64,000 nt of DNA from Malacoraja senta (Eukaryota), in NCBI GenBank assembly GCA_038087875.1, contig JAXLNO010005073.1, positions 248,001 to 312,000 on the forward strand. The letters are read 5' to 3'. Positions 2,521 through 58,335 of the stretch are shown here, one piece after another (within the stretch, counting starts at the first letter, position 1; every line of letters begins with the position of its first letter). A program made the position numbers and the translations under genes. The notes below the pieces were generated by a model. That model worked only from the letters and a program-made list of their open reading frames with translations. It did not search any database and was not told where the DNA came from.

Positions 2521-2704
2521 GGGATCGTCCTTGTAAACGCTAACTCTTTTGTCTTGCTGATGTTGAGGGATGGATTGTTATCCTGACCATAGGCGCAGGA
2601 GTGGGCCATTCGGCCCTTCAGGACAGAAGGTTCTCAATGTCTTTCCCATATTCTATCTCATCGTTGCTGCTCATGTGGCTGAAATAATGCCCCATCTACA
2701 CCAG

Positions 2705-16143: not shown

Positions 16144-19100
16144 AGAATGTACAAAATGAGGCCGAGGTTTCTCTGCAGCAGTTTGCCACTTGGTTTGATG
16201 TTCGGTTTCTTTGTTTTCCTGCTTCGACCAGTTTCCACACAGAGTAAGTGCTTTCTCTTCGCTGGTCACAATCACCTTGCATTAATTATCATTGTCCGTG
16301 TAAACCCGCACCCATTGTCAATCTCGCTTTACTCTCAACATCCCTGAATGTGTTGCTGCCTCATAAACCCACACCATCCTTCGTGGACCTCCATTCCACA
16401 TCCCTGAATGTGTTGCTGCCTCATAAATCCACACCATCCTTCCTGGACCTCCATTCCACATCCCTGAACGTGTTGCTGCCTCACAAATCCACGCCATCCT
16501 TGCTGGACCTCCATTCCACATCCCTGTATGTGTTGCTGCCTCACAAATCCACACCATCCTTGCTGGACCTCCATTTCTGAGCCCATCCCATCAACTCCCT
16601 CTCCTTCTCCTGCACCGACACGGTCCTTATCAAAGTCAGAAATGGCCTCCTGTGAGCTTGTTGCAGAGTTAAACTCTCCCTCCTCATCCCGCTCAGCCTC
16701 TGCAGCCTTTGACACGGTTGTCCACACCATCCTTCCCAACATCTCCTCACCACAGTCCAGGTGGGTGGAACTGCCCTCGACTTATCGATCCAGTCGCAGC
16801 CCGAGAACCACGCACAATGTCTTCACTTCACGCTCCCACAAAGTTCCTTCAAAACCAGGTGGAGTTCCTCCACTACCCCAACACAACCCCCTATCCCCAC
16901 CTACGTCTCCCTCCCTCCCACTCACTCACTTCTCTCATGTGATGAAATATCCCTGCATCAATCAGGCCAGGTTATTCCAGACCACATCTCTTCACAAACC
17001 GTGTCTTCCTCGCTGGGGTTTCCAAGGAAGATCACAACTGTCTGGAATTAAATTCAGTTCAAAATTAATGATTACAGATATGGGGTGGATGGGGAAAATG
17101 TGTTTTAAATATTAATTCTTCATTGTTCGTATTCGCAACAGCAAATAGAAATCGAATGTATTTCTTGGATAATGGAGGCGACATTGTGTTAAACGGACCG
17201 GACAATGCTGAGAAAGACACTGTTGTTGTCTGGGAATGGAAACCACACTCAGGGAAGGAAATCGGAAAATTGTCGACTTTTAGAAGAATGGGGCGCGATT
17301 GGATCAAAGTGAAGGCCGCTGGCGAGAGTAAAGTGGACTTGTACCCGGAGATGAAAGTGTATTCCCGTACCCTTGATCTGACAATTGATAAACCCACATT
17401 TAAATGGGCGGGAATTTTCACTTTGGCTCAAACAGAACCGAGAAAGCAAATCCTGAAACAATATGAAATATTTGGGATGAAAGGTGAGTGGGAGCGATAA
17501 GGATCAATAATGTTTAATTTATCTCTGTAAGTATTGTCACCTATAATGATGAGAGATGGCGGGAATTGTGAGACTTCTTCCACCCGGTGAAACGTTAAAC
17601 AACTGGGGAAGTGTTTTTGTTCATTGATTCTGTAATGATCAGCAGGGGTGATAATAGTTTGATGACTTCACTGGGAACAGCAAATCAATGAATCGACCCG
17701 CAGCGAATACCATGGTCTTCTTGCCTGCACACGGTAAGGTGATCGCGGCAAGGTGGTATGGAACCAATGTCTCCATGCAGTGGCCCCGGGTTAACACTGC
17801 TACTTAATGTTACCCTGTGACCAGGTGGATGGAAGTCCATCGCCTGTGGAACATGGGCTCTGCCATAGAGTTCACCTCTTGAGAGCAATCAGATACACCT
17901 AGGAGTGGAAATAGATGCATTTTCAACAGTTTGTGAATATTTGAAACAGAGCATGTGTAAATACAACAACACCTGAATGTTGCCGGTTCCACCTGCAGTC
18001 ACACGGTAAACAGCCGGCATTTCGCTGCGTCAATGTGAGCAGCCACGGGTGTCAGGGTTCTGAGAGCACTTGGGGAGAAGTTGTTCTGACTTTCAGCTAC
18101 GTGTCAGCTTTAAGCCCGGTTATTGGATGAACCATGACATCCGCACTCTTCTGAAGTCCAGATTCCGGGCATTCAGGTCTGGGGATGCAGTGGTCTACAA
18201 GAAGTTCAGATACGACCTTGGTAAGGCCATCAAAAGTCCAAAAGGGACTTCTGCTCCAAGCTGGAGGATGAGACGGATGTTCGGCAACTATCTTAGGGCT
18301 TGAATGCCATCACCTCCTATAAAGGCAAATTCAGGATGTAGCTCAAATGTCAGCGAAACATCACTCCCTGACGAGCTCAATGCGTTCTATGCACGCTTTG
18401 ATAGGGAGAACACCGATGTGCCTTCCCGAGCCCCCATTCGCTGTGATGGTATTTCAGTCTCAGTCACAGAGGCCGACGTCAGGAAATCCTTCAGAGGTGT
18501 GAACCCTCGATAAGCACCTGGACCTGATGGTATACCTGGTCGTGTTCTAAAAACCTGTGCGGACCAACTGGCTGGAGTTTTTACGGACATTTTCAACCTC
18601 TCACTTCTGAGGTCTGAGGTTCCCACCTGCTTTAAAAGGGCATCAATTATACCAGTGCCCAAGAAGAGTAAGGTGATGTGTCTCAATGACTATCGACCTG
18701 TGGCACTAACACCTGTGGTGATGAAGTGCTTTGAAAGGTTGATCATGGCGCAAATCAACTCCTACCTTGACAAAAACCTGGACCCACTGCCGTTGGCTTA
18801 CCGCCACAACAGATCAACGGTGGATGCGATCTCGCTGGCCCTCCACTCTGCTCTGGACCACTTGGACAACAACAACTCATATGTCAGGCTGTTATTCATT
18901 GATTACAGCTCGGCATTTAACACAATCATCCCCTCCAAGCTGGTTACCAAACTCTCAGATCTGGGTCTCTGTGCATCCCTCTGCAATTGGATCCTCGACT
19001 TCCTCATTCACAGACCATAGTCTGTTCGTTTTGGTGGAAATGTGTCAGCCTCGATAACAATCAGCACGGGAGCACCTCAAGACTGTGTGCTCAGTCCCCT

Positions 19101-22100
19101 GCTGTACTCACTCTATACTCATGAGTGCGTAGCCGGACATAGTGCGAACTCCATCATCCAGTTCGCTGACGACACCACTGTTGTGGGACAAATCACTGAT
19201 GGGGACGAGTCAGAGTATAGAAGAGAGATCGAGCAACTGTCCATATGGTGCCAGCACAATAACCTGGCCCTCAACACCAGCAAAACCAAGGAATTGATTG
19301 TGGACTTTGGAAGGGGTAGGATGGGGACCCACATTCCCGTTTATATCAACGGGTCGATGGTGGAAAGGGTCAAGAGCTTCAAATTCCTGGACGTGCATAT
19401 TTCCGAAGATCACTCGTGGTCCCAGAACACTGATGCAATTATAAAGCAAGTACATCAGCGCCTCTACTTCATGAGCAGATTACGGAGAGTCGGTTTGTCA
19501 AGGAGGACTCTCTCTAACTACTACAGGTGCACAGTAGAGAGCATGATGACCGGTTGCATCGTGGCTTGGTTCGGCAACTTGAGTGTCCAGGAGCGGAAAA
19601 AGCTACAACAAGTAGTAAACACTGCCCAGTCCATCATCGGCTCTGACCTCCCTTCCATCGAGGAGATCTATCGCAGTCGCTGCCTCAAAAAGGCTGGCAG
19701 CATCATCAAGGACCCACACCATCCTGGCCACACACTCATCTCCCCGCTACCTTTAGAGAGATTAGAGAGATTCCTTTATTTGTCATTCAGACCTTTCGGT
19801 CTGAACGAAATTTCGTTGCCTGCAGTCATACATATAATAATAAATGACAAAACACACAATAAACACAAATTAACATCCACTACAGGACCCTGAAATCTGC
19901 AACATCCAGGTTCAGGAACAGCTGCTTCCCCACAGCCATCTGGTTATTAAACACAACTTCAAACAAACTCTGAACTATAACAGCCTATTGCACTTTATCT
20001 GTTTATTTATGTGTGCATATATGTATATATATTCTATGGTACATGGACACACTGATCTGTTCTGTATTTATGCCTACAATATTCTGTTGTGCTGCAGCAA
20101 GCAAGAATGTCATTATCCCATCTGGGACTTGACCTGTACAAACCACTACTCACTCTGAATCTCATTGATCTGTTTTTCACAGTTGAGGCAAGTCCACAGA
20201 GGCCTCTGCTGGGCAGTGACGTCACACTCAGCTGCACCATCTCCAGACTCTCAGATACAGTCAGTCTTTACTGGAGACCCATGGACTCATCCCAGCAGAA
20301 CAGGAGCAACACTGATCAGATCCGCCTGGATAACACGGTCTATCTGATGGTTCAACACGTTACAGTGGGGGATGGGAAGCTGTATGTGTGTGATGTGCAG
20401 GAAAACGGAAACATTGTTCACACAAGTAATGGAGATTTTACTGTAGAGAACGGTGAGTGTAAACACCTCCCATTGGATATCAAGTAGACACTTGTATCAC
20501 GGTGCTTCTTGTAATATTATGTGCGCGCCCTGTGAAGAACTGTGGCAGTGACCAACTGCTCTCCAGTATAAAATGCTGCAATGATCAGGGAGAAGTTTAC
20601 AGAAAGTCTCTCTCTCTGTGGAGCAGCTGCCTGCTTGTCTCTGTGTGACAGACACACAGCACAGGAGGGGGATGTCTTTCTGTAACCATTCTTCAGTCAA
20701 GTATTTTGTCAGTTTATCTTGCCATCAATGCTCCAGTATCTGAGACTGAGATACTGATACAGGACTCATGTCAAAGTGTCAGATAGAAAGTGTAGTCACC
20801 ATTACAACCACCAGCACTTGCTGCTCACACTCACACTGGGGGTCCCGGCCCACACATCAGCACTGAACAACAATCCATCCCCTCTCCCCTCACTGACCCT
20901 TCTCTCCGAGTCTGGTGTTGCTTGAAGTGATTCCAACTGCTGCAGACTCTGGCTTCGGATCAGCATTCAGCTGGGAGCAGGACCCGGGAACAGGGAAGAA
21001 CAGGGAATCAATGGGTGTGAATGGGAGAGGGATGGTGGGAATAATGGGAATGAAGGGACGGGAAGACCCGACCTACTTGAAGTGCGAACCTGTCCGGGTC
21101 AGTCCCCACGCAGGCATCCTCTGGGCTGCTTCTGTCCGCAGCCTGAACCTGCACCACCTCCTGCAGACAAACTGACAGAGACATTCACCTCCCAGACCGC
21201 TCTCGGGAGTCTCCGGGAGGTTTCATTCCATCCCGGGAGATTCCCGGACAGTCGGGGTGTGGGGGCGAACCTAATGTTGAAATGTAGAGTGGAATATCCA
21301 AACTTCACTGCAATTTACTGCCGTACAGGACATTGTATTTTATAAAGATCTGATGAGTTTAGTGCGGCATTCATGAAAGATGTTACATTTGAAACTTGAT
21401 CAGCTGAACAAAACACCACGAATGTTTATAAGAATACGGTTGAGAATCTCTGTATGGCACGGTAACTGTAATACTGAAAGGAGTTATCCTCTGTCTCTCT
21501 GATACAGATTTATATAGGGAGACATACACACTTTACCGCTCCAGCACAGATCACAGTGAACTTCACCTGGTTTGTTCTGTGAGTTATGGTGATAGCTATT
21601 CCCGTGCTGAGTGGACCTGGACACCTCATCGCCTTCAACAGCAGAAAGTAATAGCATCTGCAGAACGTTCTCAGCCCATCAATGTCAAAGGGACCGACTT
21701 CAGGAATCGATTGGTGACCTCAGGGAAACCCTTCGATGGCGAGGATTTTAGTGTGAGGATTGTCCCCGTTGTGTTTCAAGATGCCGGAGTTTACGCATGT
21801 TTTCTGGAATCATATCCATTTCTCACCATTGATCTAATCACAGTGAAAGGTAGGAGACAGAATGTTGCCACTGAGTTTACTGATGAACTTATTGTTTAAA
21901 ATGTAAACAACCTGCTTGTTTCCACAGTCACAGCTGAACCGTCTGATGCAGTGACTGAGGGAGACAACGTTACCCTGACCTGCTCTGTGTCTCACGTCAC
22001 TGGGTCAATGAGACTGGTTTGGATCAATGGCGATGGCAAAAGTGTTGGAGAAAAGACACTGACTGTGGAAGAGAAATCACAGAGTCTGGTTATTCAGAAA

Positions 22101-25100
22101 GCTGAGAGAGGCAGAGGGAACTGGAGATGTGGTTTGTTTCATCAAGACCTGCCCCGGCTTGTTGTCCCGTACTATCAGGAGCCCCGTGGTAAGTGATAAG
22201 GGTTTGTTCTTCATACTTAGAGTCATGATTGAGTTTTGATGTCGCTTATTGATCCTGAAATTTGAGTGGAATATTTTCTTCCAGTTTGAGTGGTCTAACT
22301 CTGTTATGAATACCGAATTCTCAAATTTCAAATAACACTTCCCGAACCCCACTTCTCCCCCCCCCCTTCATTGTGCACGCATTTATCCCACCACCCAGTT
22401 ATCCTATTCTCTTCCCTTCCTCTTTCAACTCATCTCCCACCCCTTCCAATTGCAGAGTTTTCCTTTTATGTTCTTGCTCCACTTCCACCCATATCCCTCC
22501 CTCTGTTACTGATCTGACTGTAGATCAGTCAGTATTAGTTGACCTGATCTATGTCATGTTTTACTGCATGCCGCTGTGTACTCAAACAGTCATCATATTA
22601 TCTGGTCTGTTAGTCCAGCCTCTAGTTAGATTCGTTGCTGAGCTTGAGCTTACAACACCTAAGTATTTGAGCTCTGTGTGTTTACTATAACAAACAACTT
22701 CTTCTTATGTATGGATCCTGTTATTACACATGTTTACACTGACAACCTTTTGTCTCCATTTCACCCCTCCATTTTGGCATTATCTCCATCCATCTACTCA
22801 TCACCATTCCCCACCTGTATCCACCTATCACTCACCATGCTTTGTCTCATGCCTACTTCCCTTCCCCAGTTGTCACTCTCCCATTCCATCAGTCTGAGAA
22901 TGCATCCTGACATGAAACGTCATCAATCCATTCCCTCCACAGATGCTGCCTGACCCATTGAGTTTCTCCAACACTTTGCTTTGATCAACATTCCACAATC
23001 TGCAGTTCTTGTGTCTCCATGGAGACCCACTGGTCAACGTGGACAGATTGCTGCAGAGGGCCTGTTTCCATGCTGTTCCATGATGATGAATTATAACGTA
23101 CAACTTAGTAAAGATTAATTCTCTGCAATATTGCTACTGACAAGGTCAGTGAAAAATTATTGTCCAACATTTACACATTTGTTCTCTTTTCCTACAGGAA
23201 GTGGACATTATATGTACTTTTTCCATCAGGAAGGCAACTTTGTATTGAAAGGACCAGACAGTCTGGAAATGGCCCCATTGACTTGGAATGGAGGCCACAC
23301 TCAGGGCAACAAACCACAAAGCGATTGGCCACTTTCCACAGAGAAGATCAGCAGTGGGACGTACAATGGAGTGATGAGTACATTCAAATACCAGGCATTT
23401 CCCAGAGGATGCATGGCGGACTGGGGTACCCTTAATCTGAGGATCAGGACGCCACATTCAAACTTGCAGGACTGTTCACCTGGACTCAAACAGAGCCCGC
23501 TGGGAAAATCCTGAGACAGTGGGAACTATTTGGGATCAAAGGTAATAGAGTCATAGTGTCACACAGCACTGAAACAGGCCCTTTGGCCCAATTCATCCAT
23601 ACTGACCAACTACCATCTAAACATCCCATTTGCCCTCATTTGGCCCATATCCCTTCAACCTTTTTTCCATCTACCTGTTTAAATGCCCTTTAAATGCTGT
23701 ACCTGCATCAAACACTTCCTCTGCTCGATCTTTCCATAAAGTATGTTTAGGTACCACACTCTTTGTCAAAACTGCCCCTAATATTAAGGGGTATATCAAA
23801 TCTGCCCCTCTCACCTTAAACATGTACTATCTAGTTGTTGATTCCCCAACCCTGGACAAAAGACCATGTGCGTTTACTATAGATATGCCTCTCATGATTT
23901 TATTCACCCATATAATCTCTGTTAAAGACATCCAAGAAATATAATGTCTGAAGAAGGGTCTCAACCTGAAAAGTCACCTATCTATGTTCTCTAGAGTTCA
24001 AAGGTCTTTTATTGTCACGTGTACCAATTAAGGGGCAGTGATATTCATATTACCAGACCTGCTGAATTACTCCTGCACTTTATGTCCTTTTATATATTAA
24101 CCAGCATCTGCAGTTCTGTGTTTCTACTATACTAAAAACATCCCTACCTGGAAGTGTTGATGTGGGAGACGAGGGGGCGAGGGGACAGGTGGTCACTACC
24201 AGGAAGTGTTGATGTGGGAGACGAGGGGGCGAGGGGGACGGGTGGTCACCTACCAGGAAGTCTTGATGTGGTAGACGAGGGGGGAGGGGGACAGGTGGTC
24301 ACTACCTGGGAAGGTGTGTTGATTGCGAGACAGGGGGCGAGGGGGACAGGTGGTCACGACCAGGAAGTGTTGATGTGGGAGACGAGGGGGCGAGGGGGAC
24401 AGGTGGTCACTACCTGGAAGTGTTGATGTGGGAGACGAGGGGGCGAGGGGGACAGATGGTCACTACCTGGAAGTGTTGATGTGGGAGACGAGGGGGCGAG
24501 GGGGACAGATGGTCACTACCAGGAAGTGTTGAAGACATCACTGAGCACGGTAGCTCAACATTCAGCCGACTGTCAGTCTGCAGGAAAAAGACAATTCTGC
24601 CCACAGTAGTTCAGAAAGCTGTTGGTGAACTGAACCACATGTGTCTGTTTCCACAGTTGAGGCCGACTCACCGAGGCCAGTGATGGGCAGTGACATCACC
24701 CTCAGCTGTACCATCTCCAGACTCTCAGATACCATCAGTCTTCACTGGAAACCAAGAGGCTCATCTCAGCAGAACAGGAGGAGCAACACTGATCAAATCC
24801 ATCTGAATAACGCCGTCTATCTGATGATCCAACATGTTGGAGCAGGAAATCCCAATCTGTACACATGGGAAGTGCAGGAAAATACCTCCATTGTTCTCAC
24901 TGGAGACACCAATGTCGAAGTGGATCAGGGTGAGTCCAAAGCTGCCTTGCAGCAGGTATTAAATAGATCTTGATATCAAACTGTTCCACATGTTGTATAG
25001 TGAGCACTGACTCCACCCGTGGGCTTCCACACTGCAGGATGTGGAGATTGCCTTTACCCTGGGGCATGGTGTAAATATAAAATGGTGGCACTAAGATTGA

Positions 25101-28100
25101 TGGAGCCACACAGGAGAACCAAGAGATTCATTTCAGTTCACCTGCATGAATCAAAGAGAATAATATCCAGTGATGGAAATAACATCTAGTTTTCAGTGTA
25201 TAACAGAACAGGAAAATATGAACTAATTCAAGTATAAATGCAGAGGAAATATCAGAATCAGAATCACATTTTATTGGCCACGTAATAATACACAGGGAAT
25301 TTGACAGTGCTTTGCTGGCATAAGGTAAAAACACGATATACAGCAGACAATTAAAAATAAAACATTATAATTTAAACATGTGAAAATAAAGTACCTGAGT
25401 AAAAAGAGGCTACCGACTTTTGGCTGTTGAGTAGAGCTACGGCTCGTGGGAAGAAGTTGTTTTTATGTCTGGCTGTGGCTGCTTTGACAATCAGGACTCA
25501 CCTGCCAGAGGGAAGTGATTCAAAGAGTTTGTGGCCTGGGTGAGAGGGGTCAGAGATGATCTTGCCCGCTCACTTCCTGGCCCTTGCAGTGTACAGTTCA
25601 TCAATGGAGGGAAGGTTGCAGCCAATAACCTTCTCTGCTGATCGGACGATTCGCTGCAGCCTCCAGGTATCGTGCTTGGTGGCTGAGCCAAACCAGACCA
25701 TGATGGAGAAGGTGAGGACAGACTCTATGATGGTAGTGTAAAACTGGACCATCATTGCCTGTGGCATGTTGTGTTTCCTCAGCTGCCGCAGGAAGTACAT
25801 CCTCTGTTGGGACTTTTTGACTGTGGAGTCGATGATGGCCTCCCAATTAAGGTTGCTGGAGATGATGATTCCGAAGAAATTAAATGACTCCACAGTTGTG
25901 ACTGTGGTGTTGTTGAAGATGAGTGGGGGAGGGGAGGGGGAGCTCTACAATCAGGAGGGGAGGATTGAGTCTACAATCAATTCCACTGTCTATAGAGCAC
26001 TGAGCTTCAGGTTGTTACCATGTCAACAGGACACCAGCTTTATGATTAGGGTGACTTGGACATCGTGCTGAAGTAAGCATGCAGGTACAGCAGGCAATGG
26101 AGAAAGCAAATGGCATGTTGGCATTCATAGCGAGATGATTTGAGTATAGGAGCAAAGAGATCCTACTGCAGTTGTACGGGGCCCTGGTGAGACCACACCT
26201 GGAGTATTGTGTGCAGTTTTGGTCTCCTAGTTTGAGAAAGGACATTCTTGCTATCGAGGGAGTGCAGCATAGGTTCACCAGGTTAATTCCTGGAATGGCG
26301 GACTGACATATTATGAAAGAATGGATCGACTGGGTATATATTCACTGAAATTTAGAAGGATGAGAAGGGTATCTTATAGAAACGTATAAAATTATTAAGG
26401 GATTGGGCAGGCTAGATGCAGGAAAAATGTTCCCCATGTTGGGCGAGTCCAGAACCAGGGGTCCCAGCTGACATCCCAGAGCCGGGGGTTTGTCCCTGTG
26501 GAAACTCACAACATTGTATCTCGGCGTGTGTGGAAATCTAATTCTTTGTTCCCTGTCCCTCTCTTGCAGGTTTACATAACAAGACGTACACAGTTTATCG
26601 CTCAGTCACAGATGACAGTCAACTCGACCTGATTTGTGAAGCTTCTCCTGAGCTCAGTGAAACCAAATGGACTTGGAGATCACCACGTTTCCAGAATCAA
26701 GAGAAGGAAATAGCTTCTTCTCACAGGTCTGGGCCGATACATGTCAACAGGAGCTACTTTCGGAATCGACTGGAAACCATAGAGGGAAATGTGAATGGCA
26801 AGAATTTCCATGTGAGGATTGTCCCCGTGCAGTTTGCAGATGCTGGAGTTTACACATGTTCCACGGGATCAAATATATATGTGACCATTGACCTAATCAC
26901 AGTTACAGGTAGGAGACTGGATGTTACTACTTTCAAGAATTAAGTTACTGGTGTAGAGTTTCTAATCTGAGTGCAGACTGCAATGTCAGCAGAAATTCCC
27001 AAGTTTGAAGAATTATTTTACCTCCAGAGCTTCCTCTTCAACTTATTTGTATTTTGCTGAACCCAAAATCTGCTCTAAACCAACATTATTGGGAAGCACA
27101 TCAAATGTTATTTTCATTTATTTCGCTGAAAACACATTGTTTTATACATAAGAGGGGGAATATGATGAAATGTGATTCACAAAGGTGCAAATGAGCTTCT
27201 ATCGAAAATATTTAAAAATCATTCAACTTCTCTTAATACATTCCCCAAGTTTCTTTGACCCCAAACGACCCATCCTAATTTTTGAAGGCTCACTGGACGC
27301 TTAAAACTGAGTGTATTTTGTGGAATTTATCGATTAATATTTACCTGGATGAGTGTTGTGGCCAAAACTGTGGCCAGAGACAATGATGTGGGCATTGGTT
27401 GCTCTTTGTATAATTAGTTCAAAACTGACGTGAATGATTATGGAAAAGACACTTGGAGAGGTACATGGATGGGAAAGGTGCAGAGGGATATGGGCCAAAT
27501 GTGGGAACATATTTTAGATGGAGCATCTTGGTCAGCATGGATGAGTTGGGCTGAATGGACCGAATTGTTTCATGCTGTGTGACTATGCCTCTAACTCTTG
27601 TTGTGTAATATAATTTTCCACACTTAGAACGCCAGATACTGGTGTCAAAGTACTGAGAAAAATACAACACAATCCAGACAAAATTCATTGTTTTACGATT
27701 TTCTTCTTTCCACAGTCACAACTGAACCATCTAGCGCAGTGACTGAGGGAAGAAACATTACCTTGACCTGCTCTGTGTCTCATGTCACTGAGTCAATAAG
27801 ACTGGTTTGGATCAATGATGAAGGCAAAGTTGTAGAGCAGAAAAATCTCATTCCAACAAAGCAGGAGAAGAATTCTTTGCAGCTGATTATTGCAATAGCT
27901 GATGGAGTAAGAAGGAAATGGACATGTGGTTTGTTTCATCAAAGAACAGCCAAGGTTGTCATTCCATATAATCTGCAGGTGAACAGTAAGTTTCTTAGCT
28001 TCTGCTCTTCGTTATCTCGACACAGAGTTCTTGTCACGTTGCTATTCTTTTTGGATAACTTTTAACATTTCATGTCTTACTGCAAGTAGAGCTCAATCAT

Positions 28101-31100
28101 AGACATTTCCTGCAAACCTCTTGTCCATGCCTATAAGGTCACTTCTATTGTAAGTAGTCCAGGTCTCTGAAGCACATGGGAGCACATGGATCACTACTGC
28201 TGGCAGACCACTGACCAAGTCCTATGTTGGCCATCTCATTGAAGGTGATCGGGAATTTCATCATCAATGTCTGTCCACAGGTATGAAAACTGGTCCAGTA
28301 GTATGAAAACCAGTGTGTCACTGTGAACCTTTTTGTCAGAGGTCAGTATAGTAAGGTGGGCAGCTTGGTGGAAGATCTTTGCCATAACACCCAAACTGTG
28401 CCCCTTAAAGATCACAAAAGTAGTGAAAATCATCTTACAAATAGTTGTACAAGTTTCTTTCCCCTGTTCTGATGCTGTAAAACATTACAGCGGTTGAAGC
28501 ATCCACAGTAACTTCACCAAAGGCTGCCGTGTGAGAACAGAAGATGTGGGGGAGGGAATACTGATGTCTTCACCTTGTCTGACCATGGTGGCGCAGTGGT
28601 AGGGTTGCTGCCTTACAGCGCCAGGGACCCGGGTTCAATCCTGACTACAGGTGCTGTCTGTATGGAGTTTGTACCTTCATCCCGTGCCCTGTGTGTGTTT
28701 TCTCGAGGATTTCCGGTTTTCTCCCAAATTCCAAAGATGTACAAGTCTGTAGGTTAATAGGCTTGGTTTAATTGTATGTTGTCCCTGTTGTGTAGGGTAG
28801 TGTTAGTCTGTGGGAATCGCTGGTTGGTGTGGACTCGGCGAGCCGAAGGGCCTGTTTCCGCGCTGTATCTCTAAACTAAACACGCCCTTTCCTCCCCATC
28901 ACCATCCATTAATCCCTGCCTTCATGTGGCCCCAAGCCTCGGTGAAAGACTTTTTGTACAATGCTGACAGAAGGCAAAGCACTGATCCCTAACAGAGGAA
29001 GATCCTGTAAACACCCAGGCACAAAGAAACAATCTCCACCACACATAGATCAATGAAGAGTCAGTGAAGCACAGTGGAAAGTATCAATGTCCCAACAGAA
29101 ACATTTTAATTCCTCATAGATAATAACATCATCCAATCATAGAATTGTGGAATGGTTGTAGCAGCAGAAGGTGGCCATTTGACCCATCATATCCATGCTA
29201 ACTCTCATCCACAGCAACTCGCTAATTCTACCCCCTCTCCTTTTGCCATTACATTGCAGCTTTTTCATCACTATATATTTCTCCAAATTCCTCTCTGGGA
29301 AAGCCACGATAGAACCCAGCTCCCAACTGATGCAGACAGTACACTTCAGACTCCAACTGCCTGCTGCCTAAAAAGATTTTCCTCAAGTCATTCTAACATG
29401 TTTTCCCCTTTATTTTAAACCTATAACTTTTTGTGCTCAGCCTTTCCACTGAAGGGAGCATCCTTCCACAATCCATTCTGTTCAGACTGAATAAATGATG
29501 CATAAATGAACAATTACGCCATTGTGCAGATAACTATTAATGACTATGATATAGTTGGGATCACGGAGACATGGCTCCAGGGTGACCAAGGCTGGGAGCT
29601 GAACATCCGGGGATATTCAATATTCAGGAGGGATAGACAGAAAGGAAAAGGAGGTGGGGTAGCGTTGCGGGTTAGAGAGGAGATTAACGCAATAGAAAGG
29701 AAGGACATTAGCTTGGAGGATGTGGAATCCATATGGGTAGAGCTGCGAAACACTAAGGGGCAGAAAACACTAGTGGGTGTTGTGTACAGGCCACCTAACA
29801 GTAGTAGTGGAGTTGGGGATGGCATCAAACAGGAAATTAGAAATGCGTGCAACAAAATAAAACAGTTATAATGGGTGACTTCAATCTACATATAGATTGG
29901 GTGAATCAAATTGGCAGGGTGCTGAGGAAGAGGATTTCTTGGAATGTATGCGGGATAGTTTTCTAAACCAACATGTAGAGGAACCAACGAGAGAGCAGGC
30001 TATTCTAGACTGGGTATTGAGTAATGAGGAAGGGTTAGTTAGCAGTCTTGTTGTGCGTGGCCCCTTGGGCAAGAGTGACCATAATATGGTTGAGTTCTTC
30101 ATTAGCATGGAGAGTGACATTGTTAATTCAGAAACAAGGGTTCTGAACTTAAAGAAAGGTAATTTTGAGGGTATGAGACGTGAATTTGCCAAGATTGACT
30201 GGCAATTGATTCTTAAAGGGTTGACGGTGGATATGCAATGGAAGGCATTTAAAGACTGCATGGATGAACTACAAAAATTGTTCATCCCAGTTTGGCAAAC
30301 GAATAAATCAGGGAAGGTAGTGCATCCGTGGATAACAAGGGAAATCAGGCATAGTATCATAACAAAAGATGAAGCGTACAACTTAGCCAGAAAAAGCAGC
30401 CTACCAGAGGACTGGGAGGAATTCAGAGTCCAGCAGAGGAGGACAAAGGGCTTAATTAGGAAAGGGAAAATAGATTATGAAAGAAAACTGGCAGGGAACA
30501 TAAAACCTGACTGCAAAAGATTTTATAGATATGTGAAGAGAAAGAGATTAGTTAAAACAAATGTAGGTTCCTTGCAGTCAGAAACAGGTGAATTGATCAT
30601 GGGGAACAAGGACATGGCAGACCAATTGAATAACTTCTTTGGTTCTGTCTTCACTAACGAAGACATAAATAATCTGCCGGAAATAGCAGGGGACCGCGGG
30701 TCAAATGAGATAGAGGAACTGAGTGAAATCCAGGTTAGCCGGGAAGTGGTGTTAGGTAAATTGAATGGATTAAAGGCCGATAAATCCCCAGGGCCAGATA
30801 GGCTGCATCCCAGAGTACTTAAGGAAGTAGCCCCAGAAATAGTGGATGCATTAGTGATAATTTTTCAAAACTCCTTAGATTCTGGAGTCGTTCCTGAGGA
30901 TTGGAGGGTAGCTAATGTAACCCCCCTTTTTAAAAAGGGAGGGAGAGATAAAACGGGGAATTACAGACCAGTTAGTCTAACATCGGTAGTGGGGAAACTG
31001 CTAGAGTCAGTTATTAAAGATGGGATAGCAGCACATTTGGAAAGTGGTGAAATCATTGCACAAAGTCAGCAAGGATTTACGAAAGGTAAATCATGTCTGA

Positions 31101-34100
31101 CGAATCTTATAGAATTTTTCGAGGATGTAACAAGTAGAGTGGATAAGGGAGAACCAGTGGATGTGTTATATGTGGACTTTCAGAAGGCTTTCGACACGGC
31201 CCCACATAAGCGATTAGTATACAAACTTAAAGCACACAGTATTGGGGGTTCAGTATTGATGTGGATAGAGAACTGGCTGGCAAACAGGAAGCAAAGAGTA
31301 GGAGTAAACGGGTCCTTTTCAGAATGGCAGGCAGTGACTAGTGGGGTACCGCAAGGCTCAGTGTTGCGTCCCCAGCTATTTACAATATACATTAATGATT
31401 TGGACGAGGGAATTGAATGCAACATCTCCAAGTTTGCGGATGACACGAAGCTGGGGGGCAGTGTTAGCTGTGAGGAGGATGCTAGGAGGCTGCAAGGTGA
31501 TTTGCATAGGCTGGGTGAGTGGGAAAATGCATGGCAGATGCAGTATAATGTGGATAAATGTGAGGTTATCCACTTTGGTGGCAAAAACAGGAAAGTAGAC
31601 TATTATCTAAATGGTGCCCGATTAGGAAAAGGGGCGATGCAACGAGACCTGGGTGTCATGGTACACCAGTCGTTGAAAGTAGGCATGCAGGTGCAGCAGG
31701 CAGTGAAGAAAGCGAATGGTATGTTAGCATTCATAGCAAAAGGATTTGAGTATAGGAGCAGGAAGGTTCTACTGCAGTTGTACAGGGTCTTGGTGAGACC
31801 ACACCTGGAGTATTGCGTACAATTTTGGTCTCCAAATCTGAGGAAAGACATTCTTGCCATAGAGGGAGTACACAGGTTCACCAGATTGATTCCTGGGATG
31901 TCAGGACTTTCATATGAAGAAAGACTGGATTGACTCGGCTTGTACTCGCTAGAATTTAGAAGATTGAGGGGGGTTCTTGTAGAAACTTACAACATTCTTA
32001 AGGGATTGGACAGGCTAGATGCAGGAAGATTGTTCCCGATGTTGGGGAAGTCCAGGACAAGAGGTCACAGTTTAAGGATTAAGGGTAAATCCTTTAGGAC
32101 CGAGATGAGAAAAACATTTTTCACACGGAGAGTGGTGATTCTCTGGAACTCTCTGCCACAGAAGGTAGTTGAGGCCAGTTCATTGCCTATATTTAAGAGG
32201 GAGTTAGATGTGGCCCTTGTGGCTAAAGGGATTAGGGGGTATGGAGAGAAGGCAGGTACAGGATACTGAGTTGGATGATCAGCCATGATCATATTGATTG
32301 GCGGTGCAGGCTCGAAGGGCCGAATGGCCTACTCCTGCACCTATTTTCTATGTTTCTATGATGTGATGAAAGAGCATTATTGACTCTTGTCTTCAAACTC
32401 TCTCTTCAGTGTGCCATGGTAATAACTGGACAGAGAACAGCCATTAAAAGAATCTCAATTATACCAGCCATGTTTACTGTTTAGTTTAGAGATACAGCGC
32501 GGAAACAGGCCCTTCGGCCCACCGGGTCCACGCCAACCAGCGATCCCCGCATAATAACACTATCCTACACCCACTCGGGACAATTTTTACATTTACCATG
32601 CCAATTAACCTACAAACATGTACCTCTTTGGAGTGTGGAAGGAAACAGAGGATCTCGGAGAAAACACATGCAGGTCCCGGGGAGAAAGTACAAACTCCGT
32701 ACTGACAGCACCCGTAGTCGGGATCGAGCCCGGGTCTCCGGCGCTGCATTCACTGTAAGGCAGCAACTCTACCGCTGCGCCACCGTGCCGCATTCATTGT
32801 GTCATCTCTTTGTGACATGTTTACAGTTTGACTTGCCGATTCAACTGCTTCAATGCACCATCTGATGTGATTATTTGACTGAACACAGCAACCTGCTCCC
32901 TGATGGTCACTGTGTGCTTCAGGTTGGTGTTATTAATCCTTACTCCTGGCGAGCAGCAGTCTCCCCCTGGGAGAGGACAACAGGGCTCTGACTATAGTCG
33001 GCTGAGAGTCCACTGAGGAATGAAGGCTTTGGTTGTCCTCTGCCTGTGCCTCAGTGCCAGTAAAACCCTGCTCCGTCAGCCGCTGCACCAAGGGAGAGGC
33101 CACCCCAACCCACACCGACTCCCACTGTGGTGTCCTCACCTCCCAGATTGGAAATCTGTGCTCCCGGCTGAGCAGAAGCCTCCCCATGTACGCTCATCTA
33201 GCACAGTCTCACTATGGAGCAGAACTGAAGTTGAACTTTATTTTACAAGGGTCGCGCACACCAGCCTCTCCATCCTTTGGCCTCATTGCAGACTGATGCT
33301 TTTGGGTGTTGAGCTGTCCTTAGAGGGCAGGACATATCAATCAGTGAGTGAATAGATTAGTTGGTGTGTGGAATTAATGCATGGATCAACCATCTCCAAT
33401 TTTACACTAAAAACACATGAAGTTGTGCTCATTAGGATTGCAATAATAATGTGTTCAACCTCATTGACATCAGTAGGCAATGGTTACATGCACAATACAG
33501 TTTTAGTACTTGAAGACCAAAATTAATTTTAGGAGTTGAAAATCGGAATTAAAAATAATAATAATAATCAGCAGGACAGATAGGAACTGTGAAAGAGGAA
33601 CAAGTCCAGCCATGATCGCATTAAATGGCGGTGCTGGCTCGAGGGGCTGAATGGCCTACTCCTGCACCTATTGTCTATTGGCAAAGATCCTTTCTTTGAA
33701 TCTGACAATGTTTTATTCATCATAAAACATGAACTCACTTCTTTCCCTTTCCACGGATACTGCTCAAACGGCTGAGTATTTGTAACGTTTACAGTTCTTG
33801 AGCTCCTGGTTAGAGAGGATTGAAGCTGGAGGGCAATATCCACTCTGTTGTCAGCAGTGTTCATTCAACCATTGTTCCAGGCTTGGACTTTGATAGACAT
33901 TTGTCCACTGTACAGGGGGAAGTATCACAGCTGAATCAGCTACTTTATCAACCAACCATCAGCTCCCATCTCCTGCCTGAGAAATGTCAGCTGATTGTAA
34001 CCAAGAAATAGAAACTTGTGTGAATGTTTACAGTCTCTAACTGATGGCTACTGAGAAAAGTTGTGGCTCTCTGATCTTTGTGAGTAAGGTTAATTTATCT

Positions 34101-34550
34101 GGGGAAAAAAAGACACAATGTGCTGGAGTAACTCAACGGGTCAGGCGGAATCTCTGGAGAACATGGATAGGTGAGGTTTTGGATCTTGACCCTACTTCAG
34201 ACTAAAGGGCTGCGACCCGAAATACCACCTGCCTAACCTGCTGAGTTTCTCCAACACTTTGTGTCTTTTATTGGTAAACTCTCATCTGCAGTACCTTGTG
34301 TCTCAGTGAATCTGGATCACAAGTTAAACTCAAGACTTCTGATCTAAATTAGTCAGTGTGGTTAATGCCTGGTCTTTGGGGGAGCTTTTGAATGATGTCC
34401 ATTTATTCTACAAATGTGAACTCTGTGTTTATTATTTTGACAGGGAATTATACTTTTATATACATCATTGTTGGAATTATCGGGAGTCTGGCTGTTCTCA
34501 TCGTCATTATACTGGCAGTGGTGTGGTGTCAAAGAAAGCGCAAGCCTACA
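16144..34550 (+). CDS. Spliced gene: 8-Ig-domain type I membrane receptor, (V-C2-V-C2)x2-TM, CD4/LAG-3/G6F-like family; cytoplasmic exon(s) not resolved
   Basis: Ten exons with canonical AG/GT join in phase 1 from leader to TM (about 880 aa). Exon D5 is 344 nt and out of frame as assembled. Confidence 0.85.
16147..16243 (+). CDS. Leader (signal peptide) exon
   Basis: Acceptor ttatttccaaacag ends at 16143; [32 protein letters not shown]; donor A|GTAAGT, phase 1. Confidence 0.85.
16340..16577. repeat. 60-bp tandem repeat x4
   Basis: Consecutive 60-nt lines repeat in register. Confidence 0.95.
16600..16950 (+). mobile_element. Old L2-type LINE RT fragment
   Basis: [13 protein letters not shown] ... 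[12 protein letters not shown] resembles the L2 RT motif LDLSAAFDTVDH. Confidence 0.65.
17142..17483 (+). CDS. Exon D1, V-like Ig domain without canonical cysteines
   Basis: 342 nt, phase 1-1, cgcaacag| ... G|GTGAG; DIVLNGP...[10 protein letters not shown]...[23 protein letters not shown]...YEIFGMK. Confidence 0.85.
18095..20135 (+). mobile_element. Rex1/Babar LINE, 5'-truncated and decayed
   Basis: [43 protein letters not shown]. Confidence 0.92.
20183..20452 (+). CDS. Exon D2, C2-like Ig domain
   Basis: 270 nt, ttttcacag| ... G|GTGAG; [34 protein letters not shown]. Confidence 0.9.
21508..21849 (+). CDS. Exon D3, V-set Ig domain
   Basis: 342 nt, gatacag| ... G|GTAGG; [40 protein letters not shown]. 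Confidence 0.92.
21928..22188 (+). CDS. Exon D4, C2-set Ig domain with WxC motif
   Basis: 261 nt, ttccacag| ... G|GTAAGT; [33 protein letters not shown]. Confidence 0.92.
23198..23541 (+). CDS. Exon D5, paralog of D1, frameshifted as assembled
   Basis: cctacag| ... G|GTAATA, 344 nt. D1-like motifs ([15 protein letters not shown]; LEWRPHSG; GTLNLRI; [22 protein letters not shown]) alternate between two frames. Confidence 0.8.
24150..24532. repeat. ~53-bp G-rich minisatellite, about 7 units
   Basis: ggaagtgttgatgtgggagacgagggggcgagggggacaggtggtcactacca repeated. Confidence 0.93.
24657..24929 (+). CDS. Exon D6, paralog of D2, F-strand Cys replaced by Trp
   Basis: 273 nt, ttccacag| ... G|GTGAG; [27 protein letters not shown]. 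Confidence 0.9.
25250..25990 (-). mobile_element. Rex1/Babar LINE 3' fragment
   Basis: [42 protein letters not shown]. Confidence 0.85.
26066..26465 (+). mobile_element. CR1 ORF2 3' fragment
   Basis: [15 protein letters not shown]-encoding sequence. Confidence 0.85.
26570..26908 (+). CDS. Exon D7, V-set Ig domain, paralog of D3
   Basis: 339 nt, ctcttgcag| ... G|GTAGG; [40 protein letters not shown]. Not in the supplied ORF track because it lacks an in-frame start. Confidence 0.9.
27716..27985 (+). CDS. Exon D8, C2-set Ig domain with WxC motif, paralog of D4
   Basis: 270 nt, ttccacag| ... A|GTAAGT; [29 protein letters not shown]. Confidence 0.92.
28583..28878 (+). mobile_element. HE1/V-SINE-type SINE
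   Basis: Similar to 4022-4312. Confidence 0.82.
29505..32360 (+). mobile_element. CR1 LINE, near-complete ORF2 (APE endonuclease + RT), frameshifted
   Basis: [32 protein letters not shown]; (tttctatg) tail. Confidence 0.96.
32485..32790 (-). mobile_element. HE1/V-SINE-type SINE
   Basis: Reverse complement of the SINE head and core. Confidence 0.85.
34444..34550 (+). CDS. Transmembrane exon
   Basis: ttttgacag|; (R)[35 protein letters not shown]; hydrophobic span plus basic stop-transfer; donor ACA|GTAAAG, phase 0. Confidence 0.82.
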
Positions 34551-37511: not shown

Positions 37512-38255
37512 ATGGGTCAATTGCAGGCACATGGGTCTAGCTTGGATGGAGCAACTTGGATGGTATAGACTAGTTGAGCCAAAGGACATGGTTCTGTGCT
37601 GTATGACTCTATGACTCTTTGACTTTATAAAAAGGTGATAAGAATTTAAATTGTGCCCTCTCTCTAAACAGGTTTGGGCAATCAAAGACAGACAGCTCCA
37701 CCATCAAAAAGAAACACAGAAAGTGAATCTCAACTTTAAGGCAACCTTGAAGAAATTCAGCAGATGGCAGGTGTAGTGGCCATTTGGCCTGTTTTACATG
37801 TCACTGATGATGGCATGTGCCTTTAAATTTTAGACTGCCCGTTGTATTGTGGGTGGGATTTATGACGTGTTTTTAGGCATGTTTGGAACTTAGATGCTTG
37901 CGCAGAAGTCTAGTTTTTAGATTAGTTTGGAGAGACGATGGAGAAGGTCAAACCTTCGACCATGTCAATGTTACGGAGACACGAGGAGTTTTGTCATGTT
38001 TAAAGTTGCAAGTTGGAATTGAAGGAAGATTGCAGCAACGAGTCGGAAGAAACTTGGATGTATCTTGCTGTTTACCATCAACAATAAAGCATTTATTCAA
38101 CAAAAGACTGTGTGTTGAAGCTTTATGAGTGAAGAGGCTCTGAAGGTCTCTGAGGAAGCTTGCATGAGTATTGAAGATATTCCCCTTATCCATTCTCATC
38201 CAAATAGCGGCTAGAGAATTTGTTTCTCAAAAGATAAGAAAAATCTGCCGTTACA

Positions 38256-38547
38256 ATAAGTCGAAGGGTACCTCCGGCAGGGGGGTTAAATACTAGTCCC
38301 AGAGACCGGGACAGAAGATTAAATCAAAGGGAACCTCCGGCTGGGGGGTTAAGTACTAGTCCCAGAGAGTGGGACAGAAGATTAAATCGAAGGGAACCTC
38401 CGGCAGGGGGGTTAAATACTAGTCCCAGAGAGTGGGACAGAAGATGAAATCAAAGGGAACCTCCGGCAGGGGGTTAAATACTAGTCCCAGAGAGTGGGAC
38501 AGAAGATTAAATCGAAGGGAACCTCCGGCTGGGGGGTGAAATACTAG
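38256..38547. repeat. 63-bp tandem repeat x4.6 with GTCCCA-GAGAG-TGGGAC hairpin
   Basis: Unit starts at 38261, 38324, 38387, 38450, 38512. Confidence 0.95.
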
Positions 38548-40798
38548 AAAGGGACATTGAGGGTGGTCTTTGACTGTGCTGCAGTCTTTAAAAGTACATC
38601 GCTTAACAGTGAACTACTGCAAGGTCCAGTCCTTACCAACTCACTCATTGGAGTTCTCATCAAATTTAGGCAAGAACCGATTGCTTTAATGGCTGACATC
38701 AGATCGATGTTTCATCAAGTGAAAGTAGCTGGTGAACATATTGATTACCTGCGATTCTTATGGTGGCCTGAAGGGGATGTGCAGCAAGATCTTGTTGATT
38801 ACCGGATGAAAGTACATCTCTTTGGAGCCGTGTCATCTCCAAGTTGTGCGAACTTCGCTTTAAGGAAGACCGCAGAGGATAATAAAGATTATTTCCCAGA
38901 GGAGGTAATTTCCACTTTGACAAATAATTCCTACGTGGACGATTGCCCAAAATCCATATCTACTGAGCAGAAAGCAATTCAAATGGTAAAACACCTGACC
39001 TCTCTCTGCAATAAGGGAGGATTTGTACTTTCCAAGTGGATCAGCAACAATCGTGTTGTATTGGAAAGCATTCCACCAGATGACAGAGCTGAAGAAACCA
39101 AGGAGTTGGATTTAGTTAAAAACAATTTGCCAATGGAAAGGGCACTGGGACTGCACTGGTGCGTGGAAACGGATGTGTTTAAGTTTAAATTGTCGATTCA
39201 GGAGCGACCATGTACAAGAAGGGGTATATTTTCTGTGATTGGCTCAGTATACGACCCTTTGGGATTTCCTGCACCATTTACACTGCCAGCCAAGTTAATT
39301 TTACAAAATCTTTGTAAGGAAAAACTTGGATGGGATGAGAGTATAACTCAAACATCCTCGCACCGTTGGCCAGAATGGTTAACGGACTCCATAAAATTTC
39401 AAAGTTTAAGGTGGATCGGTGCATAAAGCCTAAAAACTTTGGTAAGATCAGAAGTGCACAATTGCATCATTTTTCGGATGTCAGTGAAAGTGGTTACAGG
39501 ACTGTTTCATATTAAAGACTGCAAAATGTTAGCAAAAGAGTGCATGTTGCATTCTTAATGAGAAAAGCCAGAGTGGCACCACTGAAACAAATGACGATTC
39601 CCAGAATGGAACTTACAGCAGCAGTCTTAGCTGTTAAAATTGACATAATGCTGCAAAAGGAACTACAATTTCAACTGGAAGAATCTATCTTCTGGACCGA
39701 TAGCACTACGGTTCTGAAATACATCAATAATGAAAACAAACGCTTTATGACATTTGTAGCAAATTGAGTCTCCTTTGTATTGGGAGCTACTAATGTTTCT
39801 CAATGAAGATATGTTAGCACCAAAGAAAATCCTGCGGATGAAGCCTCTAGAGGACTAACAGCAAATTGTTTTCTAAACAACAGGAGATGGATCAATGTGC
39901 CCAAGTTTCTTTGTGAACAAAGCAGAGAATGGCCAAAGCTTGAACTCGGATATGAAATCTCTGTAAATGATCCGGAAATTAAACAAAACATTTCGGTGAT
40001 TGTGATTGCTAAAGACTCATATGACACCGTGAACAATTTAATTACCCACTTTTCATCATGGAATAAATTGATAACTTCTTAAGATAAATTGATAATTGTT
40101 CTTAAAATAAAAACAAGTTTATTGCTGGCGGCTCGAGAAAGGAGACAAATTACAGAGTATCCTGGGAGAGAATCCTGATAAACGGAAAGGAGAGATTGAA
40201 GGCCAGATGCAAGTTTTTGAAGCTTCATATGACGTACAGGATTTACGTCTTGATGATGTCCTCAAGGCGGAAAATGCGATCATCTCTTTCTGTCAAAGAC
40301 AGAAATACAAAGAAGAAATATTAACATTGGAAGCTGGAGGACAGGGGGTAAAAAGAAACAGTCAATTGTACAAGCTCGACCCAGTCTGGGAGGAAGGTCT
40401 TCTGCGGATGGGTGGTCGCCTAAACAAATTGGCAATGCCCGTAAAAACTAAACATCCTATCATTCTCTCAAAGGACTTTTACATAACGACATTATTTTTA
40501 CGACATATTCAGGAACAAGTTAGACATGGAGGAAGAAATTATATGTTGTCCCAACTTGGTAACAAATATTGGGTTATCAAGACTGATTCTGCAGCATCAC
40601 GAGGTTCTTGGTTGATGGGAAGAATACTAGAAATCATGCCTCACGTTCAGGGTTTGGTGCGTATGGTACGTCTTAAAACAAAAAACTATGTTTTAATAAG
40701 ACCAATAACCAAGTTGTGTTTGCTTCTAGAAGGCGAAGGTGAAGATGGAAGAGTCGATGAAGGGCCATGATTGCGGATATATAGTGCATGCTATTTTT

Positions 40799-40873
40799 TC
40801 CTCGTTAGTATCGTGTTTAGTATCCCTGCCTGTCACGCGTTAGACCGGGGTTCAATTTGCCGACGAGGAGCCA
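40799..40873 (+). tRNA. Degenerate tRNA-Asp(GTC) copy followed by CCA, inside the BEL element
   Basis: TCCTCGTTAGTATCGTGTTTAGTATCCCTGCCTGTCACGCGTTAGACCGGGGTTCAATTTGCCGACGAGGAG-CCA; about 9-10 changes from the vertebrate tRNA-Asp I recall; acceptor stem TCCTCGT/ACGAGGA perfect. Confidence 0.85.
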
Positions 40874-41242
40874 CAGGGTTTAATTCCCTGACCTTTTGCT
40901 TTTGATATATGTATAGCCTTTATGGCCATTTTTTAAATGTTTATTAGTAATTGCCTCATTAGATACTCGGAACAATTAGGAGCCGGTATGTAGTGGCCAT
41001 TTGGCCTGTTTTGCATGGCACTGATGATGGCATGTGCCTTTAAATTTTAGACTGCCCGTTGTATTGTGGGTGGGATTTATGACGTGTTTTTAGGCGTGTT
41101 TGGAGCTTAGATGCTTGCGCAGAAGTCTAGTTTTTAGATTAGTTTGGAGAGACGATGGAGAAGGTCAATCCTTCAACCATGTCAATGTTACGGAGACACG
41201 AGGAGTTTTGTAATGTTTAAAGTTGCAAGTTGGAATTGAAGG

Positions 41243-58089: not shown

Positions 58090-58335
58090 CCACCCCGACC
58101 AACATGCCCCATCTACACTTGTCCCACCCCGACCAGCATGCCCCATCTACACTAGTCCCACCCCGATCAACATGCCCCATCTACACTAGTCCCACCCCGA
58201 CCAACATACCCCATCTACACTAGTCCCACCCCGATCAACATGCCCCATCTACACTAGTCCCACCCCGACCAACATGCCCCATCTACAATAGTCCCACCCC
58301 GACCAACATGCCCCATCTATACTAGTCCCACCTGC
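58090..58335. repeat. 34-bp minisatellite, about 7 units
   Basis: Same unit as 2705-3800. Confidence 0.95.

Follow-up and report, generated by a model that had tools for sequence, protein, structure and literature searches.

A probably non-functional copy of an eight-immunoglobulin-domain receptor gene in Malacoraja senta and the unnamed shark and ray family to which it belongs

A stretch of 64,000 nucleotides from Malacoraja senta (assembly GCA_038087875.1, contig JAXLNO010005073.1, positions 248,001 to 312,000 of the forward strand; hereafter the window) contains the exons of a type I receptor gene with eight immunoglobulin (Ig) domains. An initial annotation had taken this locus to encode an eight-domain protein, but the copy is broken. 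It fails to provide an open frame through the eight domains, owing to indels and a stop in the exon of the fifth domain, and it has no tail of the type that carries immunoreceptor tyrosine-based inhibitory motifs (ITIMs), its first cytoplasmic exon being stopped or frame-shifted and the ITIM exons not being found in the window. We read the locus, with a probability of roughly 60%, as a damaged and probably non-functional copy of a gene in an unnamed multigene family of type I receptors. The eight-domain architecture itself is genuine and old as a trait of that family.

Exon structure of the locus

All positions below are those of the window, and all exons lie on the forward strand. Relative proteins are given as P-numbers, public sequencing runs as X-numbers, and the LOC129701493 locus of the little skate (Leucoraja erinacea, CM054017.1) as L001. 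The Ig domains are called D1 to D8, the transmembrane exon TM and the cytoplasmic exons T1 to T4.

The gene begins with a leader exon for a signal peptide (16147-16243), which runs from an ATG to a phase-1 GT donor, is collinear with 5179-5275 of L001, and shares 96.9% identity over 32 amino acids (aa) with the leader of the little-skate protein P0211 as mapped on L001. The V-like domain D1 (17142-17483, 342 nucleotides (nt), AG/GT borders) lacks the canonical cysteine pair and shows the motifs WEW and AGxFT; a per-exon Pfam scan gave no match for it, and it aligns with D1 of family members. D2 (20183-20452, 270 nt) is C2-like with matches to Ig_3, ig and C1-set, and its F strand has YVC (20383-20391) rather than WxC. 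D3 (21508-21849, 342 nt) is a V-set domain (E=1.5e-5) with the motif DAGVYAC, and D4 (21928-22188, 261 nt) is a C2-like domain that matches ig and Ig_3 and carries WRC in its F strand (22122-22130). The broken D5 exon (23198-23541, 344 nt) contains three one-base indels. It is followed by the C2-like D6 (24657-24929, 273 nt), in which the F-strand cysteine is absent (LYTWEV, with YTW at 24860-24868), by the V-set domain D7 (26570-26908, 339 nt, E=5e-7), and by the C2-like D8 (27716-27985, 270 nt), which has WTC in its F strand (27919-27927) and shares 81% identity with D8 of little-skate P0229. Overall, the Pfam matches are of V-set type for D3 and D7 and of generic Ig type for D2, D4, D6 and D8.

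The TM exon (34444-34550) encodes an uncharged helix followed by CQRKRKPT and has an AG acceptor and a GT donor, the donor being one G short. T1 (37672-37770, AG/GT borders), the first cytoplasmic exon, was recovered by tblastn (E=3e-11); it is homologous to the ...GLGNQRQK...LYxN...IQQMA segment of relatives and contains a TAA at 37737-37739. AG acceptors are present on all Ig exons and the TM exon, and GT donors on all exons. The leader, the eight Ig exons and the TM exon stand where the initial annotation had placed them, and the WxC motifs that it reported in D4 (WRCGLF) and D8 (WTCGLF) are present as well. Since that annotation ended at 34550, the lesions of the TM donor and of T1 had escaped it.

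D1-D4 and D5-D8 form two paralogous V-C2-V-C2 cassettes of four exons each. The protein identity between the cassettes is 65% for D2/D6, 60% for D4/D8, 52% for D3/D7 and about 38% for D1/D5, and this range of 38-65% indicates that the duplication is old. The proposed (V-C2-V-C2)x2-TM layout of eight phase-1 Ig exons is thus borne out as far as the two cassettes are concerned; it fails at D5, where 344 nt break the frame. The missing cysteine of D6 was considered as a possible sign of decay and this was rejected, because every shark and ray relative shares the absence; YTW is also found in D6 of Mobula, Leucoraja, Amblyraja and Scyliorhinus proteins, and the loss is a family trait. We found no further exons of the receptor family in the window beyond the gene described, and no other cellular genes; none were called in the 10-kb flanks of L001 either.

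Lesions relative to the little-skate ortholog

L001, the locus of the nearest complete relative, aligns collinearly with the window in both exons and introns (84-92% identity) and is therefore its ortholog. This collinearity stops at 37772, just before a BEL/Pao fragment. In L001 the D5 exon has 345 nt and is open, the TM exon has 108 nt, and all exons except the leader are multiples of three. The resulting open frame of 909 aa comprises the leader, D1-D8, TM and T1, and continues into the ITIM tail of P0229. The RefSeq model of LOC129701493 begins at a methionine inside D5, though the locus (5179-32525 of L001) has an open frame from the leader onwards, and the public model looks 5'-truncated. 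The protein most similar to the window in D1-D7 is P0211, whose exact sequence is not on record. We rejected P0211 as the product of L001 because it matches that locus at only 72-90%, which makes it a paralog.

Exon-by-exon alignment with the ortholog revealed five lesions in the window copy. Three are in D5, the only Ig exon whose length is not a multiple of three (remainder 2): a C is missing after 23262, there is an extra base near 23415, and another C is missing near 23451. Read on from D4, the exon leaves the family frame after ...KGPDS and runs into a TGA stop (23512-23514), and its homologous reading requires three frame changes. The fourth lesion is the absence of one G at the TM donor (ACAGGTAAAG in L001, ACAGTAAAG in the window), so that the splice phase becomes 0 instead of 1. 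The fifth is the stop in T1, where the window has TAA and L001 has TAT for the conserved tyrosine of the YxN motif; with the shifted phase-0 donor, T1 is open for 33 codons. Downstream of T1, we found no counterpart of the tail exons T2-T4 (AEYMSV, IHYGSISF and SVIYAQI) in 37771-64000.

The lesions in independent reads of relatives

The best public runs share at most 54% of the words of the window, and the evidence from reads thus concerns relatives and not the species of the window itself. X6 and X7 come from one organism that diverges by about 1-2% from the window in unique intron DNA. In both runs the A at 37739, which makes the TAA, accounts for about 98% of the depth, whereas X2 has a T. 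Because it is seen at this depth in two independent runs, the stop is not an assembly slip. At the TM donor (34550), about 65% of the depth in X6 and X7 has the extra G and about 35% the window form. After 23262, about 47% of the X6 depth includes the extra C, and window-type alleles at these two sites range over about 35-53%. Window-type indels therefore exist in independent data of a close relative, and the mixed sites fit either two near-identical copies or two alleles, only one of them with frameshifts.

Several points weigh against a non-functional copy. Three of the four one-base indels sit in short C or G runs (CC to C, CCC to CC and GG to G), and, the reads being from relatives, the one-base indels may be of assembly or allelic origin. 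With such an origin, the gene could be an intact eight-domain one, the changes in D5 and at the TM donor being homopolymer contractions in the assembly or a null allele. In favor of this explanation, the ortholog is intact, and the intact form makes up 47-65% of the depth in contigs of the closest available relative. Against it, the seven other Ig exons, about 2100 nt, are free of any frame break, the T1 stop is a substitution rather than an indel, the runs with the intact form also contain the window-type alleles at 23262 and 34550, and the ITIM exons were not found across 26 kb downstream. We consider an intact gene improbable.

The ratio of nonsynonymous to synonymous substitution rates (dN/dS) against the ortholog also fits poorly with plain decay. 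It is 0.79 overall, 0.4-0.6 in D2, D4 and D6, and 1.7 in D1. These values are not those of clean neutral decay; they are compatible with a recent loss of constraint on a fast-evolving receptor and are not decisive. In addition, all exons are phase-1 symmetric, so that skipping of D5 would keep the frame. Finally, fixation of the TAA seems to have occurred in the close relative, perhaps in a second, otherwise intact copy, and the difference between about 98% for the stop and about 35-53% for the frameshift alleles could perhaps point to a maintained tail-less variant.

These last points could be accommodated by a shorter working product: a seven-domain protein that skips D5, a four-domain protein that joins D4 to TM, or a soluble D1-D4 form, acting as a decoy or adhesion-type molecule with a short, tyrosine-free tail and not as an inhibitory receptor. 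Skipping any of the phase 1-1 Ig exons preserves the frame, D1 or entire cassettes are missing from RefSeq isoforms of relatives (e.g., P0014 compared with P0153 and P0236), the phase-0 donor leaves T1 open, and dN/dS is below 1 in D2, D4 and D6. However, neither a D4-D6 nor a D4-TM joint is among the RNA joints listed, no RNA contig of X1 lies on the TM exon (one is identical to D4 over 157 nt), and D5 is among the two most conserved domains of the family, which makes its loss unlikely to be neutral. We regard a shorter product as unlikely, and a damaged, probably non-functional copy as the best account of the locus.

An eight-domain family in sharks and rays

We searched a profile of the D4 and D8 exons against 1.8 billion proteins and obtained 61 proteins at E<=1e-10; the best were elasmobranch proteins, each of these named 'uncharacterized'. 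A search with one full-length relative listed 118 proteins, including eight-domain predictions of about 850-1000 aa from more than 15 species of sharks and rays (in Pristiophorus, Heptranchias, Heterodontus, Carcharodon, Cetorhinus, Rhincodon, Stegostoma, Ginglymostoma, Pristis, Hypanus, Hemitrygon, Mobula, Amblyraja, Rhinoraja and Leucoraja). Examples of eight-Ig members are XP_072120630.1 from Mobula birostris (974 aa) and UniProt V9NJF3 from the nurse shark (916 aa, 'obscurin-like'); other automatic names among the relatives are CEACAM5-like, VCAM1-like and CD276. Four-domain forms of about 450-600 aa occur beside the eight-domain forms, and four-domain relatives with similar tails, all unnamed, are present in chimaera, coelacanth, sturgeon, eels, tarpon, salmonids, carps and characins. 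The accession series show that, in each species, the family genes are clustered on one chromosome.

Domain by domain, the eight window exons match the same domain of other species. A tree of four-domain modules places D5-D8 from all sharks and rays in a single clade (support 95%). Its sister clade (support 97) unites the D1-D4 modules with the four-domain proteins of elasmobranchs; bony-fish proteins and another four-domain lineage, to which the chimaera belongs, fall outside. The single D5-D8 clade indicates that the doubling happened once, before sharks and rays parted, and bears out the earlier suggestion of a feature confined to cartilaginous fish, here the sharks and rays. The D1-D4 and D6-D8 segments of the window group with the matching modules of little-skate P0206. 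Mean identity among 19 eight-domain proteins is lowest in D1 (46%) and highest in D5 (73%) and D6 (77%).

The initial annotation had asked for spliced transcripts. RNA contigs of related skates do contain GT..AG joints from D4 to D5, D5 to D6 and D6 to D7, and also joints from a D2-like exon to D3 and from D7 to a D8-like exon. The contigs with these joints are about 5% divergent from the window, and their D5 is intact, with the C that the window lacks after 23262. What they document is expression of the architecture in related skates or paralogs, not expression of the window copy.

Two relatives depart from the common layout. The Scyliorhinus canicula protein P0001 (XP_038652085.1, 1710 aa) has about 15 Ig domains, equivalent to about four repeats of the cassette, ahead of a single TM helix and an ITIM tail, and represents either a further expansion or a fusion of neighbours by the gene predictor. 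The Amblyraja radiata protein P0236 (LOC116978604, 532 aa) has four domains, D1 followed by D6-D7-D8, showing that relatives recombine phase-1 exons or skip them in frame.

Our literature search did not find a description of the family; only papers on CD4/LAG-3 and on G6fL turned up, and a paper on the cartilaginous-fish major histocompatibility complex does not mention the family. The eight-Ig, ITIM-tailed, CD4-like receptor is known in databases only as unnamed predictions. The idea of an undescribed system stands as far as the papers searched go, but not with regard to the databases, where RefSeq predictions cover many elasmobranchs and V9NJF3 the nurse shark.

Fold of the ectodomain

The fold was tested on a predicted model of the relative P0153 and not on the window protein. 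AlphaFold modeled the four-domain ectodomain of P0153, from an alignment of 23 rows, with a predicted local distance difference test score (pLDDT) of 84 and a predicted template modeling score (pTM) of 0.81, as four beta-sandwich domains in which continuous strands (103-118 and 309-324) connect D1 to D2 and D3 to D4. Structure prediction, a check that the initial annotation had called for, yielded a CD4/LAG-3-like fold for this relative. The eight-domain model of P0200 (19-row alignment, pLDDT 54, pTM 0.34) was poor, and we therefore used it only for the domain count and the position of the TM helix.

Foldseek against the Swiss-Prot models returned CD4 or LAG-3 as the top 17 matches, followed by a drop to IGSF2/8 and Ly-9, and against PDB the best natural matches, with the highest template modeling scores, were LAG-3 and CD4. 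Over about 175 residues spanning both domains, the CD4 fragments D1D2 and D3D4 fit D3-D4 with deviations of 2.5-3.6 A, as compared to 10-29 A for nectin, CAR and JAML. At the level of profiles, a search of the family against PDB ranked LAG-3 first (3e-12) and CD4 next (3e-11), with pIgR, CEA and NCAM at 3e-11 to 9e-11; LAG-3 was also the best PDB match with a single sequence. The end of D3 together with D4 aligns to both V-C2 junctions of LAG-3, including WxC. This motif is invariant in the family (W409/C411), and Y202-x-C204 of D2 is conserved.

The likeness of the ectodomain to CD4 and LAG-3 holds, on the predicted model, as one of fold and geometry. It could instead be convergent or generic, with the family belonging to ITIM receptors like CEACAM, Siglec/CD22, SLAM or IGSF2/3/8. 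Indeed, pIgR, CEA and NCAM come within one log of LAG-3 in the profile search, the CD4-specific Pfam family gave no match at E<=1 on full-length relatives nor any in the per-exon scan, the automatic names include the CEACAM5-, VCAM1- and obscurin-like ones and CD276, and ITIM tails are typical of multi-Ig ITIM receptor families. What speaks against convergence is that the top 17 fold matches are all CD4 or LAG-3, that CD4 fragments superpose so much more closely than nectin, CAR or JAML, that the long strand from V to C2 is predicted twice, and that WxC aligns with both WxC motifs of LAG-3. We find a convergent or generic origin doubtful, and we retain a likeness to CD4 and LAG-3 in fold and geometry. 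Of the CD4/LAG-3 signature claimed for the locus at the outset, the V-C2-V-C2 arrangement and the WxC motifs of D4 and D8 remain, whereas D2 and D6 lack WxC and the characteristic tail motifs are absent.

Cytoplasmic tails and proposed function

In the relatives, the tail contains, in this order, LY[S/G/A]N, AEY[M/A][S/T]V, an ITIM (..IHY[G/A]S[I/V]..) and a C-terminal ..VIYAQI.. that resembles an ITIM or an immunoreceptor tyrosine-based switch motif, the last two being spaced about 35-40 residues apart. Judged from these motifs, such a tail is probably that of an inhibitory receptor that recruits SH2 phosphatases. A mid-helix lysine in TM (..YLLVKL..), together with a short tail devoid of tyrosine motifs, is found in P0016, P0004 and P0021 (from Pristiophorus, Chiloscyllium and Heterodontus); members of this kind are likely to be activating counterparts of the ITIM-tailed ones.

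An intact elasmobranch member consists of a signal peptide, eight Ig domains arranged as two tandem CD4/LAG-3-like V-C2-V-C2 rods, an uncharged TM helix and a tail with tyrosine motifs. The pattern of conservation suggests that the variable, membrane-distal D1 would bind a ligand on another cell and that the conserved D5-D8 segment would serve as a rigid extension of its reach. Upon phosphorylation, the ITIMs could recruit SH2 phosphatases and damp signaling, and sister genes with a TM lysine and a short tail could supply activating partners. As for the window copy, a message, if made, would be out of frame in D5; were D5 skipped, the tail would still be frame-shifted or stopped ahead of any tyrosine motif. 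Its damage would be ordinary turnover by birth and death within a cluster of immune receptors.

A bolder proposal would make the family a third ancient branch of the CD4/LAG-3 lineage, with members in chimaeras and sharks as well as in sturgeons, eels, salmonids and carps. It would have kept classical ITIM signaling and split into inhibitory and activating members, and in the ancestor of sharks and rays its module would have doubled into an eight-domain receptor that reaches about twice as far as CD4. Under this proposal, the nearly fixed stop at the tyrosine of YxN would be the sign of a tail-less variant that is maintained and not of decay. We offer this as a tentative and rather unlikely idea.

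Repeats and mobile elements around the gene

Three mobile elements lie on the forward strand in or next to the gene. The intron between D1 and D2 contains a remnant of the reverse transcriptase of a long interspersed nuclear element (LINE) (18070-19893, RVT_1 match), which does not belong to the gene product, and the intron between D8 and TM contains a LINE with a reverse-transcriptase open reading frame of 678 aa (29506-32269, RVT_1 E=1.4e-29). The BEL/Pao fragment directly after T1 (38257-40900; Peptidase_A17, RVT_1 and DUF5641) has approximate limits, the low one being set by a tandem repeat at 38257-38547 and the high one being estimated. Its insertion, where the ortholog has the intron to T2-T4, may have cut off the tail exons.

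A 26-bp minisatellite is present at 239-1830 and 55089-56889 (61 and 69 copies), and a 34-bp array at 2687-3799 and 58089-58332; the two copies of the minisatellite and of the array are about 54.9 kb apart. The first 9 kb and the last 9 kb of the window match the same parts of the little-skate locus. Based on the arrays and these matches of the end segments, the receptor gene seems to lie in a segmental repeat unit of about 55 kb that recurs in tandem. Two further minisatellites are intronic, one of 53 bp x7 between D5 and D6 (24144-24532) and one of 60 bp x4 just after the leader exon (16338-16575), the latter with spurious long open reading frames on both strands.

Discussion

The window copy should not be annotated as a working eight-domain receptor, and its little-skate ortholog is the better one to study. 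The interest lies in the family. It would provide fish-wide relatives that combine the geometry of CD4 and LAG-3 with ITIM tails, and it would place inhibitory and activating members side by side. The accepted model for the origin of CD4 and LAG-3 has a V-C2 pair doubled once; the family would add a second, independent doubling, from four to eight domains, and to 15 in the catshark model. It would also serve as an outgroup for rooting CD4 and LAG-3 and offer candidate checkpoint-type receptors in sharks and rays.

With CD4, the family shares the four-domain V-C2-V-C2 module with one exon per domain, which it has twice. Shark CD4 likewise has an undivided D1 (PMC10768021). Also shared are the rigid V-C2 rod with a strand running between domains and the WxC of the membrane-proximal C2 domain; in CD4 and LAG-3, the V and C2 domains form rod-like pairs in which a strand continues from V strand G into C2 strand A (PMC10768021). 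The family differs from CD4 in having eight domains instead of four, YxC in D2 and YTW in D6 in place of WxC, no cysteine pair in D1 and D5, and a many-copy gene cluster with pseudogenes. The tails differ as well. CD4 carries the motif Cx(C/H) for LCK and LAG-3 the motif FPAL(D/E) (PMC10768021). Both are absent from the tails of the relatives and from the TM and T1 exons of the window; intact relatives carry YxN and ITIM-type motifs instead. Sharks have a separate four-domain CD4 and their own LAG-3 (PMC10768021).

LAG-3 is the best PDB profile match of the family (E=3e-12), and both are presumed inhibitory. Unlike in LAG-3, a long additional loop was not seen in D1, and inhibition would here run through classical ITIMs; the E-values for LAG-3 are only a little better than for Ig proteins in general.

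Teleost G6fL has four Ig-like domains, a single TM helix, a Grb2-type YxN early in the tail and a tyrosine-based activation motif of the immunoreceptor kind (ITAM) spread over two exons (PMC3528668). By description only, the family resembles it in its four-domain cassette (eight domains in the window gene), its single TM helix and the LYSN, LYGN or LYAN of relatives, the tyrosine of this motif being the TAA in the window. The ITAM through which G6fL signals, a pair of YxxL/I separated by 6-12 residues, contrasts with the wider spacing of the two ITIM-type motifs in the family. No protein named G6F or G6F-like was among the 118, 32 and 86 relatives listed for the shark, tarpon and carp-family queries.

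The organization of the family is that of SIRP, LILR/PIR, CD300 and fish NITR/LITR: many-copy clusters in which ITIM-tailed members occur next to short-tailed ones with a charged TM residue, pseudogenes are frequent and the distal domain evolves fast. It differs from these in its CD4-like rods and eight-domain length, and we found no link to them in sequence. Closest of all are XP_072120630.1, V9NJF3 and LOC129701493, which belong to the same family as the window gene and have what that copy lost: an open D5, a phase-1 TM donor, the tyrosine of T1 and an ITIM tail.

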